Shown here one piece after another: positions 12,238 to 20,006 of a stretch of DNA of 64,000 nucleotides (position 1 is the stretch's first letter; every line of letters begins with the position of its first letter). Under the pieces are notes generated by a model. The model saw only the letters and a program-made list of their open reading frames with translations, was not told where the DNA came from and did not search any database. Made by a program: the position numbers and the translations under genes. The stretch spans positions 62,001 through 126,000 of the IMG/VR virus record IMGVR_UViG_3300030339_000003; one strand, written 5' to 3'.

Positions 12238-13761
12238 TTAATATCCTTTTGGCATTTGAGTTATGTTACCTGCGCATAATCCCAAATACATTTCATAGTT
12301 GTTCCAATGACGTGGAGCATCTACAGGCAAGTTATAAGGCGCATCAGTTTCCCAATCGTCTGGCAGTTTATCCCAAGGGAACCAAGGATAGATGCCTGGG
12401 ATGATTCCTTTATCCCCTGGGTGATCACGTAAGTCATCCCAAATGCTTGGGTCATAGTTGTCAACATCATAATCGATATTGATTAACAGATGATGCATAC
12501 GGCTAGTGGTTGCTGTACGCGTAATGTAAACATTACCTAATTCATCTAAACGTAATTGGGAAGGTAGCACTTGTAAATCAGCGGCATACACTTCAAACAT
12601 AAACGGAGTGAAGTGATGGGTGAATGCAAATGCTCTACGACGGATGATATAATTTTTAGTCGTTTCATTCCAGGTAAAACGAGGAATGTCAAAAATATTG
12701 CACAACAGTTGTTCACCCGGTACGTCATCCACAGACAACTGAACTTTAATAACAGGAGACAAGTTATTGAAGTTTGGTGACTCCCAAGAATCGTGAGCAG
12801 GTAATGACAAATGGAATGGCGCTTGGGTGCTACGATCGTTGTCTGTAAAGGCCGCCCCTGCAACGTATTCAGGGTTAGCACTAGTCGCGTATGGATTAGA
12901 CGTGTCATAGCGCTCACCTTTGTTAGGGATCCATTTATCGTCAATTTGATCTTGGTGAACGGATAACGGATAATCAATATTCCAACCGGTGAATTCGTTA
13001 TGGAAGAAAGTATATGAGAACCCTACTTCGTATTGACCAAAGATTTCTGCTTTTTGTGGTAAACGAATTTCAGGATCTTCGAATTCAACAACAACATCAC
13101 GAACCATGATTGGGAAAGCTAATGTTTTGTAGTTGCCCGCTAAGTTACTAATGATGGTAAATGGATGTTCTTGCATTTCCGTCAAGTAATCCATAAACCC
13201 GTCCGTACGAAGTTTATTCTTAACTAACAGATCGTGAATATTTTTGATTAGCTCAACAATGCCATCGTTTACTGGTAAGTGTGCAGTTGGACTAAAAGTA
13301 AACATGGTTAAGTCACGTGAACGAATGTTATTAATTCTGTTAACGAACTCTTGTGCTTTTTGACGACTGGTAAAATGGGTGATGACTTCAACAACCACTT
13401 GCCGTCCTTCAAATACTGGTGACATGCCTAGTTTAGTTAAAGCGTCTAACCAAAAGTAAGCTTCCGTACGTGAACGACCTTGGTTGTGATAACCCGCATT
13501 AAAAGGAGATGGGTTAACTGTAGCGTCCACATATACTTTATTACGGAAAGTGCCATTCGTATAGAGGGAGTCGGCTGGGTTAGAACCAAAGTCCGCACCT
13601 ACTAATTTGGTAATCTCTGATTCACCACGAAAATAGATGTTCATGCTGTTTTGCAAATCAAAGTGTTTCAATACTAAACGAATCGAGTCATAAATGGTGG
13701 GCTGGGTAAAAGACCGGTAGATCTCCATGGCGTCGACAAACGTGCTGATCATTGCGCTCAT
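12238..13761 (-). CDS. Virion structural protein, putative neck/tail-junction protein (phiKZ gp98-like)
   Basis: 507 aa, first gene after the late promoter motif at 13783-13791. Confidence 0.5.
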   Translation of the reverse strand: MSAMISTFVDAMEIYRSFTQPTIYDSIRLVLKHFDLQNSMNIYFRGESEITKLVGADFGSNPADSLYTNGTFRNKVYVDATVNPSPFNAGYHNQGRSRTEAYFWLDALTKLGMSPVFEGRQVVVEVITHFTSRQKAQEFVNRINNIRSRDLTMFTFSPTAHLPVNDGIVELIKNIHDLLVKNKLRTDGFMDYLTEMQEHPFTIISNLAGNYKTLAFPIMVRDVVVEFEDPEIRLPQKAEIFGQYEVGFSYTFFHNEFTGWNIDYPLSVHQDQIDDKWIPNKGERYDTSNPYATSANPEYVAGAAFTDNDRSTQAPFHLSLPAHDSWESPNFNNLSPVIKVQLSVDDVPGEQLLCNIFDIPRFTWNETTKNYIIRRRAFAFTHHFTPFMFEVYAADLQVLPSQLRLDELGNVYITRTATTSRMHHLLINIDYDVDNYDPSIWDDLRDHPGDKGIIPGIYPWFPWDKLPDDWETDAPYNLPVDAPRHWNNYEMYLGLCAGNITQMPKGY

Positions 13762-13782
13762 ATTGGGTTCCTGTAAAAGTTA

Positions 13783-13791
13783 ACATAAAAT
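13783..13791 (-). promoter_or_regulatory. Putative late promoter ATTTTATGT
   Basis: Motif copy 22 bp upstream of the start at 13761. Confidence 0.55.
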
Positions 13792-13795
13792 TTAC

Positions 13796-13826
13796 TATTA
13801 CTAGCGGGGTAACCCCGCTAGTAATA
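13796..13826 (-). terminator. Hairpin terminator
   Basis: 14-bp stem TATTACTAGCGGGG / CCCCGCTAGTAATA. Confidence 0.8.
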
Positions 13827-13835
13827 TATTTATTA

Positions 13836-14588
13836 TTATTCGGTAAGCAATACAGGAAAGCCAGCGCTATCAGTATTTTTGATAGACAACGTAAATAAAC
13901 GTCCTGCTTGAGTTTTAACAACAAACATTGAACAAGAATCAAATTGCTCAATTCCCATTACTTGACCTGCCGCAATATCGTCAATGACGCCAGGTAATAT
14001 GGCTGGGTTATCTTTACACGCTATTGTTAAGGCATTAATATATTTGGATGATAATTTATTGCCGGTGAAAACTTTACTTGTCGGATGAACCATGATGAGG
14101 CTTAGTGCAGCAGCACAGATATCTTCTTTAAAAGAAGGCACAAGGCTTTTGTTACTTGCACTAGATTTCACATGACTTGCCGCAACAACCTTAATATTAC
14201 ATTTACCAAAATATAACAGAGATTTATCTGATACATTTAACGTCAATGTTTTAAAAGGTTGGTTCATCGCATTCAGGTCCACGGTAGTAGTGTCGTTATC
14301 GTAATCCGTATTGCGTATTAAACCTAAACCGGTAGCCTTGCTAAAAGCTTCCCAGACGTCGTTTAACGTGCACAGATCATTAACTGCCACCGTAGGAGGT
14401 TCAATGCCAAATAACCCTTCCAGGTTTGTCTTGTTAAGAATAACAGACGCTTGGACACCATTGAGTGAATAAACAATCTTAGCCGTATTGCGATCGATTG
14501 CATCTACGTATAAAAGTTTACTTCCTTCTGGTAATGACTGAACGAGTAAAGCTTGGTTAGCGATACTAATGTTTTCTAAAGGGGTCAT
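13836..14588 (-). CDS. Beta-rich putative virion protein, paralogous module to 17106-17585
   Basis: 250 aa; motif TGLGLIRNTDYD...LTLNVSDKSLLYFGKCNI; ATGA overlap with the upstream head gene. Confidence 0.55.
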   Translation of the reverse strand: MTPLENISIANQALLVQSLPEGSKLLYVDAIDRNTAKIVYSLNGVQASVILNKTNLEGLFGIEPPTVAVNDLCTLNDVWEAFSKATGLGLIRNTDYDNDTTTVDLNAMNQPFKTLTLNVSDKSLLYFGKCNIKVVAASHVKSSASNKSLVPSFKEDICAAALSLIMVHPTSKVFTGNKLSSKYINALTIACKDNPAILPGVIDDIAAGQVMGIEQFDSCSMFVVKTQAGRLFTLSIKNTDSAGFPVLLTE

Positions 14589-15994
14589 TTGGTTTCCTCT
14601 TTCTTAGGCGCAACAAAAATGCCAGGAGTGATACCTTTGATCGCTTTACTGATTGCATTGATTTCTTTACGTTGGTTAGCAAGCTTGGTCTTCAGTTCAT
14701 TAAAACGATCTTTAAGTTCTTTAGACTTTTCACTAATAGCCGCTTTTTTCACCTGGATAGCATCTTTGTCTTCATCATCAGGACTGCCGGACGTAGTACT
14801 ACTTTCCAGTGCTTTTAAATCAGAATCAATTTGATCAAATTCTTTTTGTAATTCAGTTGATGCATTAAAGCTGGTGGTAAACACTATCATCAGCTTGTCA
14901 ATAACGTTAGAAGCATCAGACACTGTATTCAAACCTGACACTGCAGTAACTGCCGCATCATTACCGGTGTTCTGAGCTAAACGAGTGACACTTGCTTTAA
15001 CGTTGTCAGGAATAGCCGCATCCTTTTCACTTACTGCATTCAATGCTTTCTTATTGGCATCTGCTGCAGTTTTAGTGGCATCAGCAATTTCTTGCAATGA
15101 CTTATCAAAATAGTTTTCTTTCATCGCAACTAAACCATCACGAATCATTTGATAAGCTTTCTGCATACCTGTTTTAACTTTATCCCATACCGCACCTTCT
15201 TGTCCTGCTAAACGATCAAGATTCAAACCGTTACACATTAAGATGCCTGAAAGATAACGTTGGTCATAGGACTGCTGAGCGTAAGGAGTGTACTGTTCCG
15301 CATTAATGAATTGTTCTAATCCACCAATCATTGTACTGTAATGGTCGAGTGTATTAAACGATTCAGTACCTTGGATTTCACCCACAGCAAAGACTTCAGG
15401 ATCAATAGTTGTTTCTTCACCCAGGTCTGTAGGTCTTTCTTCTACGTTCTGACCAAAGTGTTCACCTACGCCTTTAGCTGAACCATACTTAGCCACCATG
15501 AACGTACACAATGCTTGACACAATACACCAATACGATCTAAACGATCAACGATATCGTTTAATTGATCCAGGTCATGTGTTTCATTATCTACACATTCCA
15601 TGTAGCCTGTCTTAAGCGTACAAATGGATTCTTTCAGATGAGCTAATCCCGCAGGTACATCGTATTCAGTACTGGCATTACCTAACGAACATACCGCTGA
15701 TGCAATTACCATAGGACTGTATGGTTTGTTATCAGTAAGGAAGTTATCAATGTAATTACTTAATGCCTGGTTAGTATGTGTTAAACAGTCAATGTAATCT
15801 AGCCAATAGTCGCATGCTATCATTACTGCTGTATTGATTTGTTTCTTAATATCTTTAACTTCACCAAATGTAACGTATGGAGCTATGCTTTCTCTAATAT
15901 CTTTAAACTCATCTGAAGTAAAGATAGTCTCCCTTTCATCCTTATTCAGTACCAGTAAAGTATTGAGTAGCTTCAACAAACTAATATCTATCAT
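14585..15994 (-). CDS. phiKZ-like internal head protein (gp93-gp97 family)
   Basis: Acidic propeptide, sites GTES and GQEG, then amphipathic helix AVWDKVKTGMQKAYQMIRDG. Confidence 0.75.
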   Translation of the reverse strand: MIDISLLKLLNTLLVLNKDERETIFTSDEFKDIRESIAPYVTFGEVKDIKKQINTAVMIACDYWLDYIDCLTHTNQALSNYIDNFLTDNKPYSPMVIASAVCSLGNASTEYDVPAGLAHLKESICTLKTGYMECVDNETHDLDQLNDIVDRLDRIGVLCQALCTFMVAKYGSAKGVGEHFGQNVEERPTDLGEETTIDPEVFAVGEIQGTESFNTLDHYSTMIGGLEQFINAEQYTPYAQQSYDQRYLSGILMCNGLNLDRLAGQEGAVWDKVKTGMQKAYQMIRDGLVAMKENYFDKSLQEIADATKTAADANKKALNAVSEKDAAIPDNVKASVTRLAQNTGNDAAVTAVSGLNTVSDASNVIDKLMIVFTTSFNASTELQKEFDQIDSDLKALESSTTSGSPDDEDKDAIQVKKAAISEKSKELKDRFNELKTKLANQRKEINAISKAIKGITPGIFVAPKKEETK

Positions 15995-16060
15995 TCCTTC
16001 CTCCCCCTTTCAGGTTTAGCGACATTATATCAAAACCCTAGTGAGAAAATAATTATACCT

Positions 16061-16084
16061 TGTTGTGGGGTTTCCCCCACAACA
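16061..16084 (-). terminator. Hairpin terminator
   Basis: 10-bp stem TGTTGTGGGG / CCCCACAACA; GAAA loop on the minus strand. Confidence 0.8.
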
Positions 16085-16178
16085 GGCATTAGGCTTTATA
16101 AGTGATAACCGCTAGGATAACCATTCGTACTATACGGCATTTCACGCACAATACGTTCAGCGCCTACGGTAAAGTCAC

Positions 16179-17060
16179 TTAAGCCTCCTTTTTTCTGAAA
16201 GACTTAATGGTCAGTTTATCAACCATTGATTTGATCAGAGAACGGAAAGTTGTTTTCATGTTCTGAATGATTGAATAAGACTTCATCGTTTCTTTCAAAG
16301 AAGCCAGGCGTTCTCTTACTTCATCGCTGACTGTTTCACTACCGGACTTAATTTTATCTTCGATCTTTTTGATCATTTCGCTGGTTTTGTTAGCGGCCGC
16401 TTTGATGTCAGCAGTAATGATACCGCGGAACTTAACAAAGTAAGCAGCCCACAATTGAGCGCGAATAGAAACAGCTAATGCAATTCCCAGACCTTGTTTA
16501 CGGGCTGTGGCTTGTACGCTTTCCATAACAGCACCCAGCTTTTCGATAGCCGCTTCCAGTTTTTCTTGGAGGTGCATATCGTCAGCCATGATTTTTGCTT
16601 TCACAATACCGGCTTTAGCTTTTTGTACAGCAGACTGACCCAGGGCTTTAGCTTTATCGGCAGCACTAACGATGGCTTCTTTAACAGAAGAAGACATTTC
16701 GGCACCGCTATCAGCTTTTTCCAGCTCAGCAGTTTCAGCTTTGATTTCAGCATCTTCTTTGGTATCTTTTTCTTCTGAGTCTTTGCCAAAGAAGAAACCC
16801 CAAATGCCCGTAAAGATATTACGGATATACTGAATACTTTTACTGAAACCAGTTTTGACAGTTGACCATACAGACTCATTGCCGTGTACTGCATTACCTG
16901 GCAACATACCTGAACCAACCATCGCACCAGCCAGATAACGAACGCAATATGATTCGTTACCGTCCAATGCATCCATTGATCCCTGGATAGACATGGACTC
17001 GTGGGTCTGGTCTAAGTCTTCAGGCAACAGTGGTTCGTCTAAAACAATATCATCTTCCAT
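16179..17060 (-). CDS. phiKZ-like internal head protein
   Basis: Two GNES sites followed by VWSTVKTGFSKSIQYIRNIFTGIWGFFFG; own late promoter motif at 17098-17106. Confidence 0.75.
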   Translation of the reverse strand: MEDDIVLDEPLLPEDLDQTHESMSIQGSMDALDGNESYCVRYLAGAMVGSGMLPGNAVHGNESVWSTVKTGFSKSIQYIRNIFTGIWGFFFGKDSEEKDTKEDAEIKAETAELEKADSGAEMSSSVKEAIVSAADKAKALGQSAVQKAKAGIVKAKIMADDMHLQEKLEAAIEKLGAVMESVQATARKQGLGIALAVSIRAQLWAAYFVKFRGIITADIKAAANKTSEMIKKIEDKIKSGSETVSDEVRERLASLKETMKSYSIIQNMKTTFRSLIKSMVDKLTIKSFRKKEA

Positions 17061-17093
17061 TATAAATCCTTAAAGGGGGTTAATTTGTGTGGT

Positions 17094-17107
17094 GTAAGCA
17101 TAAAATC
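17094..17107 (-). promoter_or_regulatory. Putative late promoter GATTTTATGCTTAC
   Basis: 14-mer identical to 22901-22914. Confidence 0.6.
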
Positions 17108-17585
17108 AGAATACGGCTGTTAACGTACCTGTAAACCAAACAGAGCGTGTAATAGCTACTGATAATGTACGATCGACAATAGAAAGATCAACATCATCGA
17201 TAGAAAGAGACACCAAACCGGTTAACCAGATTAAGAGATTAAACAGACGTGTAGGTTCATCAGAAGACGTTGGGATTACATTAACTAATCCGTTCACTGA
17301 GCCGTTTGTAAAGGTCGTAGAGACATCAAAACGTTTATCCAGTAAACTGACCACTGGTTGGGTAAAATCATTACCTGCGTAATCTGAGAGATCTACAGGG
17401 TGAAACGTAAGCGCGCTCAAATCTACTTTGTCAATTTTAACCAAGTTAGACTTGTTAGTACGGTCGTAAGCAATAAAACGTTTATCGTCCAGGCCAACCA
17501 TAACAGGTGATGTTAATGGATTGCCTGTTTTAACGCTGTTTACTGCCTTTAAGATGGTTCCAATGTCAATACGGTTTATATTCAT
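17106..17585 (-). CDS. Beta-rich putative virion protein, paralogous module to 13836-14588
   Basis: 159 aa; TGLVSLSIDDVD...LSVAITRSVWFTGTL; ATGA overlap with the upstream head gene. Confidence 0.55.
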   Translation of the reverse strand: MNINRIDIGTILKAVNSVKTGNPLTSPVMVGLDDKRFIAYDRTNKSNLVKIDKVDLSALTFHPVDLSDYAGNDFTQPVVSLLDKRFDVSTTFTNGSVNGLVNVIPTSSDEPTRLFNLLIWLTGLVSLSIDDVDLSIVDRTLSVAITRSVWFTGTLTAVF

Positions 17586-18688
17586 TTAAATGCCTTTTTC
17601 ATGATGTCATGTGCTGCAGTGTCTGCACGCTGTAATGCACTTAACCCATTCTTAACAAATGAAATATAACTTACCAATGAACCTACGGCAGCAGTCATCG
17701 TGTAAGCTTCCGCTGTTGACATCCCTTCCAGATCGTTATCAGTTTTCAGTTTAATCCCAAACAACGCAGATTCTTGTTTAGAAATATCAGCAATCGCCAT
17801 TAACATGTCGGCGGTCTTAGCGAGTTTCTTCGCCAGATCGTCGTAGCGCGCCTTACTTACTTTAAACTTAGCGTCTTTAACCTCAGTAGGTTTAATCGGC
17901 ACTACGCTGAACTGGAGCACTTTACGCTTAGGTTCCGTCTGAATATCAAACCACGTAGAACCCACCAGCTTAGCATAACTGAAACGTTTCTTTTCAGCAG
18001 CTGTACCTTCGGCTACGGTTGTACCTAGATCACGAGCAATGGTGTTACCAAAGTTAACAACATCAATTAACTTAACTGATTTGTCTTGTACTTTAGCAAA
18101 CAATGATTTAGCTTCTGGGAATGAATCTTTAATAGACTTCATTTTACCTAAAACAAAATCAAGTTCTTTGGTTAACCAATCCAGGTTTTCAGGATAGGAC
18201 TTAAGCTTGTGACTATCTAAAATTAATTTAGCATTACCTGGGTAAGCAAGTTCTTTATCGAACTCAATTTCCCCTGCTTTAATCTTAGCTTCCAAACGAC
18301 CTAAGTCAGTTTTAGATTTCTTACCAAAGCCAAAGAATACTTCGCCCAGCCATTTGAAGAAGTTACCGATCATAGAGAAGAAACGTTTAATCAATGTCCA
18401 CAGCGTACTAAACAAGCCTTCGCTGCCATCGATTATAGATTGACCCTTAGGTAACAGGTGTTGGCTAAACTTTAAGTACAATGATTCAGTACCCGTCAGT
18501 TCGTCTTTATCTTTCTTAGACAATTCGTCATGCTTAACTTTAATAGTTTGCTTGCCATCATCTAAGAAATCATCAACACTTTTCTTATCCATTTCATAAA
18601 GCTGTTCAATAGTCGGGGTAGTAACGTAGCGACCATTGATATCCTCGGACTTTACATTATGATCAAAATCTTTAAATAAAGTAGTCAT
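17582..18688 (-). CDS. phiKZ-like internal head protein
   Basis: GTES and GSEG sites, then LFSTLWTLIKRFFSMIGNFFKWLGEVFFG. Confidence 0.75.
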   Translation of the reverse strand: MTTLFKDFDHNVKSEDINGRYVTTPTIEQLYEMDKKSVDDFLDDGKQTIKVKHDELSKKDKDELTGTESLYLKFSQHLLPKGQSIIDGSEGLFSTLWTLIKRFFSMIGNFFKWLGEVFFGFGKKSKTDLGRLEAKIKAGEIEFDKELAYPGNAKLILDSHKLKSYPENLDWLTKELDFVLGKMKSIKDSFPEAKSLFAKVQDKSVKLIDVVNFGNTIARDLGTTVAEGTAAEKKRFSYAKLVGSTWFDIQTEPKRKVLQFSVVPIKPTEVKDAKFKVSKARYDDLAKKLAKTADMLMAIADISKQESALFGIKLKTDNDLEGMSTAEAYTMTAAVGSLVSYISFVKNGLSALQRADTAAHDIMKKAFK

Positions 18689-18708
18689 AAATAAAAAAGC
18701 TCCGTTAA

Positions 18709-18736
18709 TACTAGCCTGGTTTTACCCAGGCTAGTA
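18709..18736 (-). terminator. Hairpin terminator
   Basis: 11-bp stem TACTAGCCTGG / CCAGGCTAGTA. Confidence 0.75.
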
Positions 18737-18758
18737 TAAGGTTTTAGAACGTTAACAC

Positions 18759-20006
18759 TTAAACGTGTGCAGCGATACCGTCGATCACAGCGCCACAGAT
18801 GTCAGCAGCCAGGCTGTTAACAGTTTTGGTCAGAGTTGCAGCAGAAGATGCTACAGCTTTAACCAGTGCAACTTTCTTGCCTGCATCAGCATCAGCGCCA
18901 GCGGCATTGATATAGCCAACCAGTTTGTCGCGTTTTGCAGCTGCGAATTTCTGATCAACTTTAGCAGTTTCCAGAGATTTCAGATGTTTCTCAACACCGG
19001 TCAGTGCAGTTTTCAGAGCGCCAACGTTGTTAACTTTAGGAGCCGCTTCACCTTTAGACAGGGTAGCAAACTTCTCAGTTTTAACAGCGCGCAGGCCCAG
19101 TGAACGTGCAGCTTTAGCAGCATCTTCCAGGGAATCGGTTTTGCCTTCGCTGGTGAACACCAGGCGCAGACCAGCGAATTCGCCGATGTAGTTGGATTTA
19201 TCACCTTCTTTCTTCTCTGCAGTTGCAGCGAATTCAGTGATTTTGGATTTCATGGTAGAAACCAATGCGCCGTAAGCGGTATTGAATTCACCCAGGCCGA
19301 TTTCGCCATCGAGCAGGTTAGCGTAAGCGCCAGTTGCTACTGCAGCGTCAGTCAGTGCCAGAGCTTTCTCGAACAGACCTTTTTCGCCGTAGTTGACGTA
19401 GCCGTTCCAGCTGCCGAGTTTGATTTTCTCTTTAACTTTAGCGCCTTCTTTATCCAGCGATACGCGGACGTTAGCGGCTTTCTTCTGCAGACCTTTAACT
19501 TTGTTAAACAGGCCAGTGAAGAATGCAACAACACCGTTGAAGATACGACGGATGAATTCCAGGACAGCTGCACCAGCGCCTTTCACTTTATCCATCAGAC
19601 CTTCCATACCGTCGCGAGCAACAGTTTCGGTAGTAGAAGCATCATAAAGATCTTCTGCGCCGACACGTGATGCGCCTTTAGAAGGTGCGCCGCCCAGGTG
19701 ACGAGCTGACAGTTTAGAAGCGTTGTTGTACAGGGATGCGAATGCACGGCTGTCGAAGTTACCAGATTTCAGCATGGATTCCATACCTTCAACGGCTTCA
19801 ACAACTTCTTCGCTTGCTTCTTCAATGGCGTCGATCTGGTCAGCCATTTCTTCGATCACTTCGGACTGTTCCTGAATTTCAGCAGTCGCTTCGGCAACTT
19901 CAGCGCGAATTTCTTGCATCACTTCAACAACAGCTTCAGTACCAGCAGCGCCTTCTTCGGACAGACCCAGTTCTTCAGTTCCAGCATACAGTAATGAATT
20001 AAACAT
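18759..20006 (-). CDS. Abundant internal head protein (phiKZ gp93-like)
   Basis: Acidic N-terminus with multiple S/A/G-x-E sites (GTEE, GMES, GAED, GMEG); amphipathic helix EFIRRIFNGVVAFFTG; strong codon bias. Confidence 0.85.
   Translation of the reverse strand: MFNSLLYAGTEELGLSEEGAAGTEAVVEVMQEIRAEVAEATAEIQEQSEVIEEMADQIDAIEEASEEVVEAVEGMESMLKSGNFDSRAFASLYNNASKLSARHLGGAPSKGASRVGAEDLYDASTTETVARDGMEGLMDKVKGAGAAVLEFIRRIFNGVVAFFTGLFNKVKGLQKKAANVRVSLDKEGAKVKEKIKLGSWNGYVNYGEKGLFEKALALTDAAVATGAYANLLDGEIGLGEFNTAYGALVSTMKSKITEFAATAEKKEGDKSNYIGEFAGLRLVFTSEGKTDSLEDAAKAARSLGLRAVKTEKFATLSKGEAAPKVNNVGALKTALTGVEKHLKSLETAKVDQKFAAAKRDKLVGYINAAGADADAGKKVALVKAVASSAATLTKTVNSLAADICGAVIDGIAAHV

Follow-up and report, generated by a model that had tools for sequence, protein, structure and literature searches.

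A slippery heptamer near the end of a head-module gene probably gives a phiKZ-related phage protein a second, extended form

We found that a gene in the head block of an uncultured phage related to phiKZ probably yields two proteins, the second of which would carry a 30-residue C-terminal extension produced by a programmed −1 ribosomal slip. The gene occupies 17060-16179 on the minus strand of the whole stretch of 64,000 nucleotides analysed here (the window), which corresponds to positions 62001-126000 of a 231,366-bp contig (G000). In the mechanism that we propose, most ribosomes would terminate at the TAA at 16181-16179 and release a 293-aa helical protein. A minority would slip back by one base with Lys tRNAs on the heptamer A_AAA_AAG, read GGA GGC TTA onward, and stop at the TAA at 16098-16096. 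The product of these shifted ribosomes would be a 321-aa isoform with a Gly/Tyr-rich tail of 30 residues, built around the conserved core ERI..E..YST.G.

Results

The slip site and its genome

The exact 293-aa protein occurs on the 231,366-bp contig, which derives from a JGI peat metagenome, as well as on six shorter independent contigs. No match was returned when the region was compared by blastn with 50,697 phage records, and distant relatives were found at the protein level only, in EL, RisingSun/Joad, and Miami. The gene order matches the head blocks of RisingSun, Joad, and EL (IP, ~370, ~160, the gene at 17060-16179, ~470, ~250, and ~500 aa), and the source is an uncultured chimallivirus-like phage, i.e., one related to phiKZ, EL, and RisingSun. 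Its genome encodes only two tRNAs, tRNA-Leu(TAA) and tRNA-Asn(GTT). Near-identical DNA was also present in biofilm, food, and freshwater metagenomes. When runs X4-X12 were compared with window positions 15950-17100, relatives with ~95-99% identity appeared in biofilm and food samples, one of them (run X7) at ~470x word depth, and a 2025 run that is labelled as a single organism also contains a close relative of the peat phage. A host or an isolate might be reached through these runs.

The gene ends in TCT TTC AGA AAA AAG GAG GCT TAA (stop at 16181-16179), encoding the C-terminus SFRKKEA, and the heptamer A_AAA_AAG lies at 16194-16188 on the minus strand in the X_XXY_YYZ phase, two codons 5' of the zero-frame stop. 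Re-reading in the −1 frame from G16188 gives GGLSDFTVGAERIVREMPYSTNGYPSGYHL, that is, 30 sense codons, and then the TAA at 16098-16096, such that the extension with its stop spans 16096..16188 (minus strand). The predicted trans-frame product joins residues 1-291 to these 30 residues for a total of 321 aa, and it would release the tryptic peptides GGLSDFTVGAER and EMPYSTNGYPSGYHL. The coordinates, the phase of the heptamer, and the translation that the sequence-only reading had given for this gene were exact when we re-read the minus strand. The text around the slip site was identical in eight independent assemblies (L005-L011, L022), and the heptamer was unchanged in contigs from four other sequencing runs. 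Hence, two of the features that define programmed −1 sites were found: a slippery heptamer in phase, both in the window (A_AAA_AAG) and as in-phase motifs in relatives, and a −1 reading frame that overlaps the end of the zero frame and continues past its stop, for 30 codons here and 30-34 in orthologues. Right after the zero-frame stop, a four-codon mini-ORF (GTG ACT TTA CCG TAG) sits 5 nt 3' of the sequence AAGGAGG (16166-16182, minus strand); it is not conserved elsewhere among the lineages and probably has no significance.

Diverged orthologues keep the tail in the −1 frame

Syntenic orthologues from several lineages were gathered from IMG/VR, JGI metagenomes, and a collection of 5.8 billion proteins. 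A homologous −1-frame tail was present in five diverged lineages, namely the window, L012, the L001/L013/L014/L025 group, L015, and L016. It measures 30-34 residues, follows the consensus ..(E/S)RI.VE.NYST.GGYRR.., and stops 7-17 nt 5' of a hairpin that the lineages have in common. The two frames overlap for only 4-10 codons, and in each of the five lineages a slip motif falls inside that overlap. The motif is A_AAA_AAG in the window, in L012 (68% identity), and in the L001/L013/L014/L025 group (~53% identity), where the preceding codon has changed from AGA (Arg) to GCA (Ala), yet A_AAA_AAG is still in phase. In L015 (51% identity) it is G_AAA_AAG, which still permits an A-site slip on A_AAG together with G·U re-pairing in the P site. 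In L016 (51% identity) the Lys codons now read AAG AAG AAA, and an in-phase T_TTT_TTC is found three codons upstream, still within the open −1 interval. Accordingly, conservation among orthologues, which had been put forward as a check on the slip, turned out in its favor, with a slip motif retained at 50-68% identity alongside a homologous −1 frame that stays open, and the trans-frame sequence bearing the marks of protein-level selection.

These marks were apparent at the codon level. Between the window and L012, the tail frame showed pS of 0.71 and pN of 0.17 (Nei-Gojobori), and the same columns read in the other two frames gave pN/pS of 2.2 and 0.78 along with 4-7 stops. A conserved tail Ser is encoded by AGT or AGC in most lineages and by TCA in L015, and a conserved Arg by CGT or AGA depending on the lineage. 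The coding-like character that had been noticed in the −1 codons was thus substantiated by both the substitution rates and these residue-preserving codon switches, and the tail is, judging from such comparisons, under purifying selection as a protein. A G-A-E processing motif that had been pointed out in the extension did not hold up, as an (S/A/G)-x-E occurs at tail position 9, 14, or 15, or is absent, depending on the lineage. The last 6-7 residues of the tail are basic in three lineages and not in the window. Six-frame translation of the whole genome contained no second copy of the tail peptide.

Relatives with the tail in frame or without it

A HMMER scan of 1.84 billion representative proteins retrieved a distant syntenic orthologue, P0013 (310 aa, contig L038), in which the tail is part of a single frame that ends QLTRSSF-PDNATSLGVTTERVETRPAYSTDNPNAIQLP before its stop codon. 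The local order on that contig is a gene like the 159-aa one, P0013, the hairpin, and a gene like the 469-aa one. P0013 aligns with the trans-frame products at an SF anchor and at the ER(I/V)....YST core. Upon shuffling its last 31 residues, 1 of 5000 shuffles reached the observed score (z 6.2; p 2e-4). This evidence consists of one short contig with a very long branch in the protein tree, and a homologue search with P0013 as the query matched only P0013 itself. Together with the orthologues that keep the tail out of frame, P0013 lends support to the core of the sequence-only reading, a −1 slip on A_AAA_AAG that adds 30 residues.

Other relatives carried no tail. The syntenic orthologue on L039 (288 aa, E 5e-69) ends ACT AAG AAA GAA GCT TAA; it has neither a heptamer nor a homologous −1 frame, and its hairpin begins 18 nt past the stop. 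The syntenic RisingSun gp71 likewise showed no tail and no perfect heptamer, and the same was true of a paralogue pair on L017, a contig that ends before synteny can be judged. In all of these tail-less cases, the hairpin or the next gene directly follows the stop. The L017 pair, from a more distant relative, consists of two tandem paralogues (307 and 302 aa, at 552-2409) with a hairpin directly after the second. In EL, the gene is absent from the syntenic head block. Two tblastn matches that had been considered as orthologues, H1 and H9, were discarded as non-syntenic paralogues. Across the relatives compared, the tail is thus, on the alignments, in frame, behind a slip site, or absent, and slip sites accompany the out-of-frame tails. 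The protein tree does not resolve the deep branches, and that of P0013 is very long, so that we claim no order between the in-frame and the frameshifted state.

Motif counts and alternative origins of the extended frame

We asked how often such an arrangement arises in this genome, using 235 crude ORF-based gene calls that cover ~215 kb of the 231-kb genome. In-phase A_AAA_AAG occurred only twice among these calls. The other instance lies mid-gene in a 183-aa ORF (...HHEIKKFDQ...; genome 21073-21624, minus strand, outside the window), and a slip there would open a −1 ORF of just one codon before termination. Taking six heptamer motifs together (A_AAA_AAA/C/G, T_TTA_AAG, G_GGA_AAG, and C_CCA_AAG), 38 in-phase cases were listed in the genome, and the 30-codon −1 ORF in the window was the longest behind any of them. 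The combination of a heptamer and a 30-codon −1 ORF exceeds chance, with the qualification that the phase of the heptamer is inherited from a conserved Lys-Lys pair and the evidence is therefore only partly independent.

Homopolymer runs are scarce in this genome. In-phase A6 runs numbered 2 against 14.9 expected, and the A6 of the window was nevertheless kept. Compared with codon-shuffled controls, A6 and T6 runs were 3-30-fold scarcer over the whole genome, and this was so in each of the three reading phases (z −3 to −8). Lys-Lys pairs were encoded as AAG AAA in 159 cases, AAA AAG in 58, AAA AAA in 32, and AAG AAG in 15. We had considered a frame-specific avoidance of A before AAA AAG (2/58 pairs; binomial 7e-6) and dropped it, as the codon-shuffled control revealed depletion in every phase. 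The depletion suggests strong selection against polymerase slippage in the phage. Since it affects all three phases, it is no proof of ribosomal slipperiness in the host and fits slippage by a polymerase equally well.

This brings up a different route to the same product, in which a phage or host RNA polymerase adds one A within the A6 run (or one U within the T6 run of L016). By sequence logic, an A6-to-A7 insertion gives an identical 321-aa protein, and a depletion of A6 and T6 in every phase is what would be expected if homopolymers cause trouble at the nucleic-acid level. Moreover, phiKZ-like phages have unusual RNA polymerases of their own. The runs are short, however: A6 in the window, L012, and the L001 group, T6 in L016, and A5 in L015, whereas known transcriptional slippage sites usually have runs of ~7-9 or more (Atkins 2016 review, PMC5009743). 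L015, with only the A5 of its G_AAA_AAG and no start codon, still keeps the conserved tail, and the replacement run in L016 is again in the ribosomal phase. No contig had an indel at the run, although contigs hide minor variants. We consider transcriptional slippage unlikely on this balance.

Alternatively, the tail could be a small gene of its own, an ORF of ~25-30 codons that is translated independently, e.g., by termination-reinitiation at a TAATG. In the L001/L013/L014/L025 group, an ATG indeed overlaps the stop in this manner and opens a 28-aa ORF, and in L016 an internal ATG is the tenth tail codon when counting starts at the T_TTT_TTC slip (column 7 in the codon alignment). Separate initiation is therefore possible in those two lineages. 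The position of the start varies, though, and in the window and L012 none precedes the conserved ERI motif: along the tail frame, a canonical start is first encountered as a GTG at codon 14 in the window and as an ATG at codon 17 in L012, where the GTG of the window is replaced by the synonymous GTA. L015 has no ATG, GTG, or TTG anywhere in the tail frame, and P0013 carries the tail as the C-terminus of a large protein. The AAGGAGG that precedes the region in the window, and from which a small gene behind a Shine-Dalgarno (SD) sequence had been offered as the alternative to a slip, encodes Gly-Gly there and is absent from the other lineages, so that this alternative lost its footing. We regard an independently translated gene as quite improbable. 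Three of the five lineages (the window, L012, and L015) cannot start the tail independently, and a change of frame within the overlap of 4-10 codons is thus required.

Least probable is that the tail is an untranslated remnant, a former in-frame C-terminus that an old frameshift mutation severed from the protein and that survives only as 3' UTR, which would accord with the in-frame version in P0013 and with the tail-less orthologues, which show that some lineages can dispense with the tail, but which is very unlikely given that synonymous changes are saturated while residues are kept, that the tail frame is free of stops in five lineages while the other two frames are full of them, and that switches between Ser or Arg codon families preserve the residue only under protein-level selection.

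A helical protein of the head block

The zero-frame product (293 aa, 16179..17060, minus strand) is an all-helical protein, as judged from the ORF list, the orthologue alignment A1, and an AlphaFold model (pLDDT 75) with eight helices and an N-terminus that is disordered as far as about residue 31. The only matches in a fold search with this model were uncharacterised proteins from Miami, RisingSun, Joad, and Aeromonas phage PS1, and a profile search of PDB sequences and a Foldseek search of the PDB gave only generic helical bundles. The protein has a conserved N-terminal module, ..VW..VK.GF.KS..Y....F.GIW.FFFGK, which begins at G60-N61-E62 (16875..16883, minus strand). This tripeptide is a candidate for the S/A/G-x-E motif that the prohead proteases of phiKZ and SPN3US recognize (PMC5694885), and G60, E62, V64, and W65 are invariant in alignment A1. 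The G-x-E module recurs in the 469-aa neighbor, in a 415-aa PF12699 protein, and in RisingSun gp71. It is reasonable to infer from this motif that the 293-aa protein is a head protein processed at E62, a predicted cleavage, and in our scheme it would be packaged and trimmed after G-N-E62.

The 415-aa neighbor matches PF12699, the phiKZ-type internal head protein, with 114.7 bits, and its nearest named relatives are in the Erwinia phages RisingSun and Joad and in Pseudomonas phage EL (39-45% identity). The 293-aa protein itself gave no PF12699 match even at E<=1, and for this reason the name "internal head protein" is a label that we infer. That earlier assignment is backed by the head neighborhood and by the shared G-x-E module, and the lack of a PF12699 match speaks against it. 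The surrounding genes form an array at 12238-20006 (minus strand) that encodes proteins of 415, 368, 293, and 469 aa. In pairwise comparisons, the 415-, 293-, and 469-aa proteins share an N-terminal G-x-E (GME, GNE, and GQE, respectively) followed by VK.G..K....IR..F, and the 368-aa protein has, by eye, a look-alike GSE stretch. The array thus has the look of a paralogue family whose members have a protease site or targeting segment in common.

RNA elements around the slip site

A stimulatory element is common at programmed −1 sites, if not obligatory, and none was found here. Downstream of the heptamer we saw no conserved structure, the MFE z-scores were unremarkable, and the only covarying helix was the distal hairpin; upstream, no SD-like stimulator was present. 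An Rfam search of the region gave no match. As no stimulator is conserved, the slip is probably inefficient.

The distal hairpin lies right after the stop of the extension, at 16056..16088 (minus strand). It has a GNRA cap and a core stem of 10 bp with a GAAA loop (16084-16061), which can be extended to 16088-16056, and RNAalifold found 14 pairs across 7 lineages, several of them with compensatory changes. The hairpin is at the same place in L001, L012-L016, L038, and L039, and a conserved GGTAT directly 3' of the core forms the 3' side of the extended stem. A T-run begins ~10-25 nt past the stem, and the terminator scan does not call the hairpin. The −1 and zero-frame stops had been placed about 10 and 95 nt from a terminator. 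These distances proved right, at 11 and 94 nt from the hairpin. As a canonical intrinsic terminator, however, the hairpin does not qualify, since such a terminator has a U-run immediately after its hairpin and here the T-run starts ~10 nt past the stem, with no call by the scan. The hairpin is probably a transcript 3'-end or terminator element, perhaps one that signals 3'-end formation or processing to the RNA polymerase of the phage itself.

Discussion

The data are best described by a change of frame near the end of the head gene that we take to be ribosomal. A_AAA_AAG and U_UUU_UUC are among the efficient −1 motifs in bacteria, with A_AAG as the best tetramer, and bare heptamers in E. coli reporters shift at well under 1% (PMC4066793). 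A_AAA_AAG had been called the most efficient −1 site in enterobacteria; its place among the efficient bacterial motifs stands, and for a phage from a peat metagenome the enterobacterial comparison is only an analogy. Given that no stimulator is conserved, the extended isoform would be a minor one, perhaps of the order of one to a few percent. Our guess is that the tail would anchor or target a substoichiometric fraction of the protein inside the capsid; it might tether the protein to the capsid shell or to DNA, or be a peptide that the protease releases.

If real, this would be a hidden isoform among the poorly understood internal or ejected head proteins of giant phages. Annotation pipelines miss the extended product, and every gene call on these contigs ends at 293 aa. 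The relatives would further provide a natural series for the origin, movement, and loss of a frameshift site, from in frame through A_AAA_AAG, G_AAA_AAG, and T_TTT_TTC to absent. Frameshifting, recoding, and slippery sites go unmentioned in a 2026 review of jumbo-phage biology. At somewhat less than an even chance, we tentatively suggest that a conserved recoding site is described here for the first time in nucleus-forming, phiKZ-like jumbo phages, with a short tail of a packaged head protein that was ancestral and then, according to lineage, was placed in frame, came to depend on a slip, or was deleted. Should that be true, frameshifting would act as an evolvable dial for the number of tail-bearing copies per capsid. 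No principle changes, as −1 extension of the C-terminus of phage structural proteins has been known since T7 gene 10.

The closest known systems are gene 10 of T7 and T3 (10A/10B), Lactobacillus phage A2, and Listeria phages A118 and A500, in which a −1 frameshift near the 3' end of a head gene yields a minor extended isoform (PMC5009743). The arrangement in the window is alike in that a minor, C-terminally extended isoform is predicted beside a major product. It differs in the protein concerned: in the other phages a major capsid protein is extended, by ~50 residues or more and often with an Ig-like domain, whereas here a helical protein, probably an internal head protein of a phiKZ-like phage, would receive a tail of 30 residues. 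T7 gene 10 furthermore uses G_GUU_UUC with a distant 3' element, and we saw no stimulator here.

The G/GT site of phage lambda resembles ours in having a simple X_XXA_AAG-type heptamer near the end of the upstream frame and a fixed low ratio of products. We know of no strong stimulator at G/GT. Its ratio of short to extended product is ~30:1 (PMC5009743). In contrast to the present gene, the lambda products are tail chaperones and do not occur in virions, the −1 frame of lambda makes up a complete second gene (T), and the genome position and protein families are unrelated. The heptamer of E. coli dnaX (tau/gamma) is identical to that of the window, A_AAA_AAG. The shift of ~50% at dnaX is accompanied by an SD-like element on the upstream side and a stem-loop on the downstream side, and neither stimulator was found here; the dnaX shift truncates the protein, whereas the shift proposed here lengthens it.

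With respect to the protein itself, the nearest comparison is with the inner-head (PF12699) paralogues of phiKZ and SPN3US. The 293-aa protein differs from them in having no PF12699 match. It resembles them in that a PF12699 gene stands three genes ahead of its own in a syntenic head block, and in an N-terminal module, common to both, that opens with a G-x-E of the prohead-protease type.
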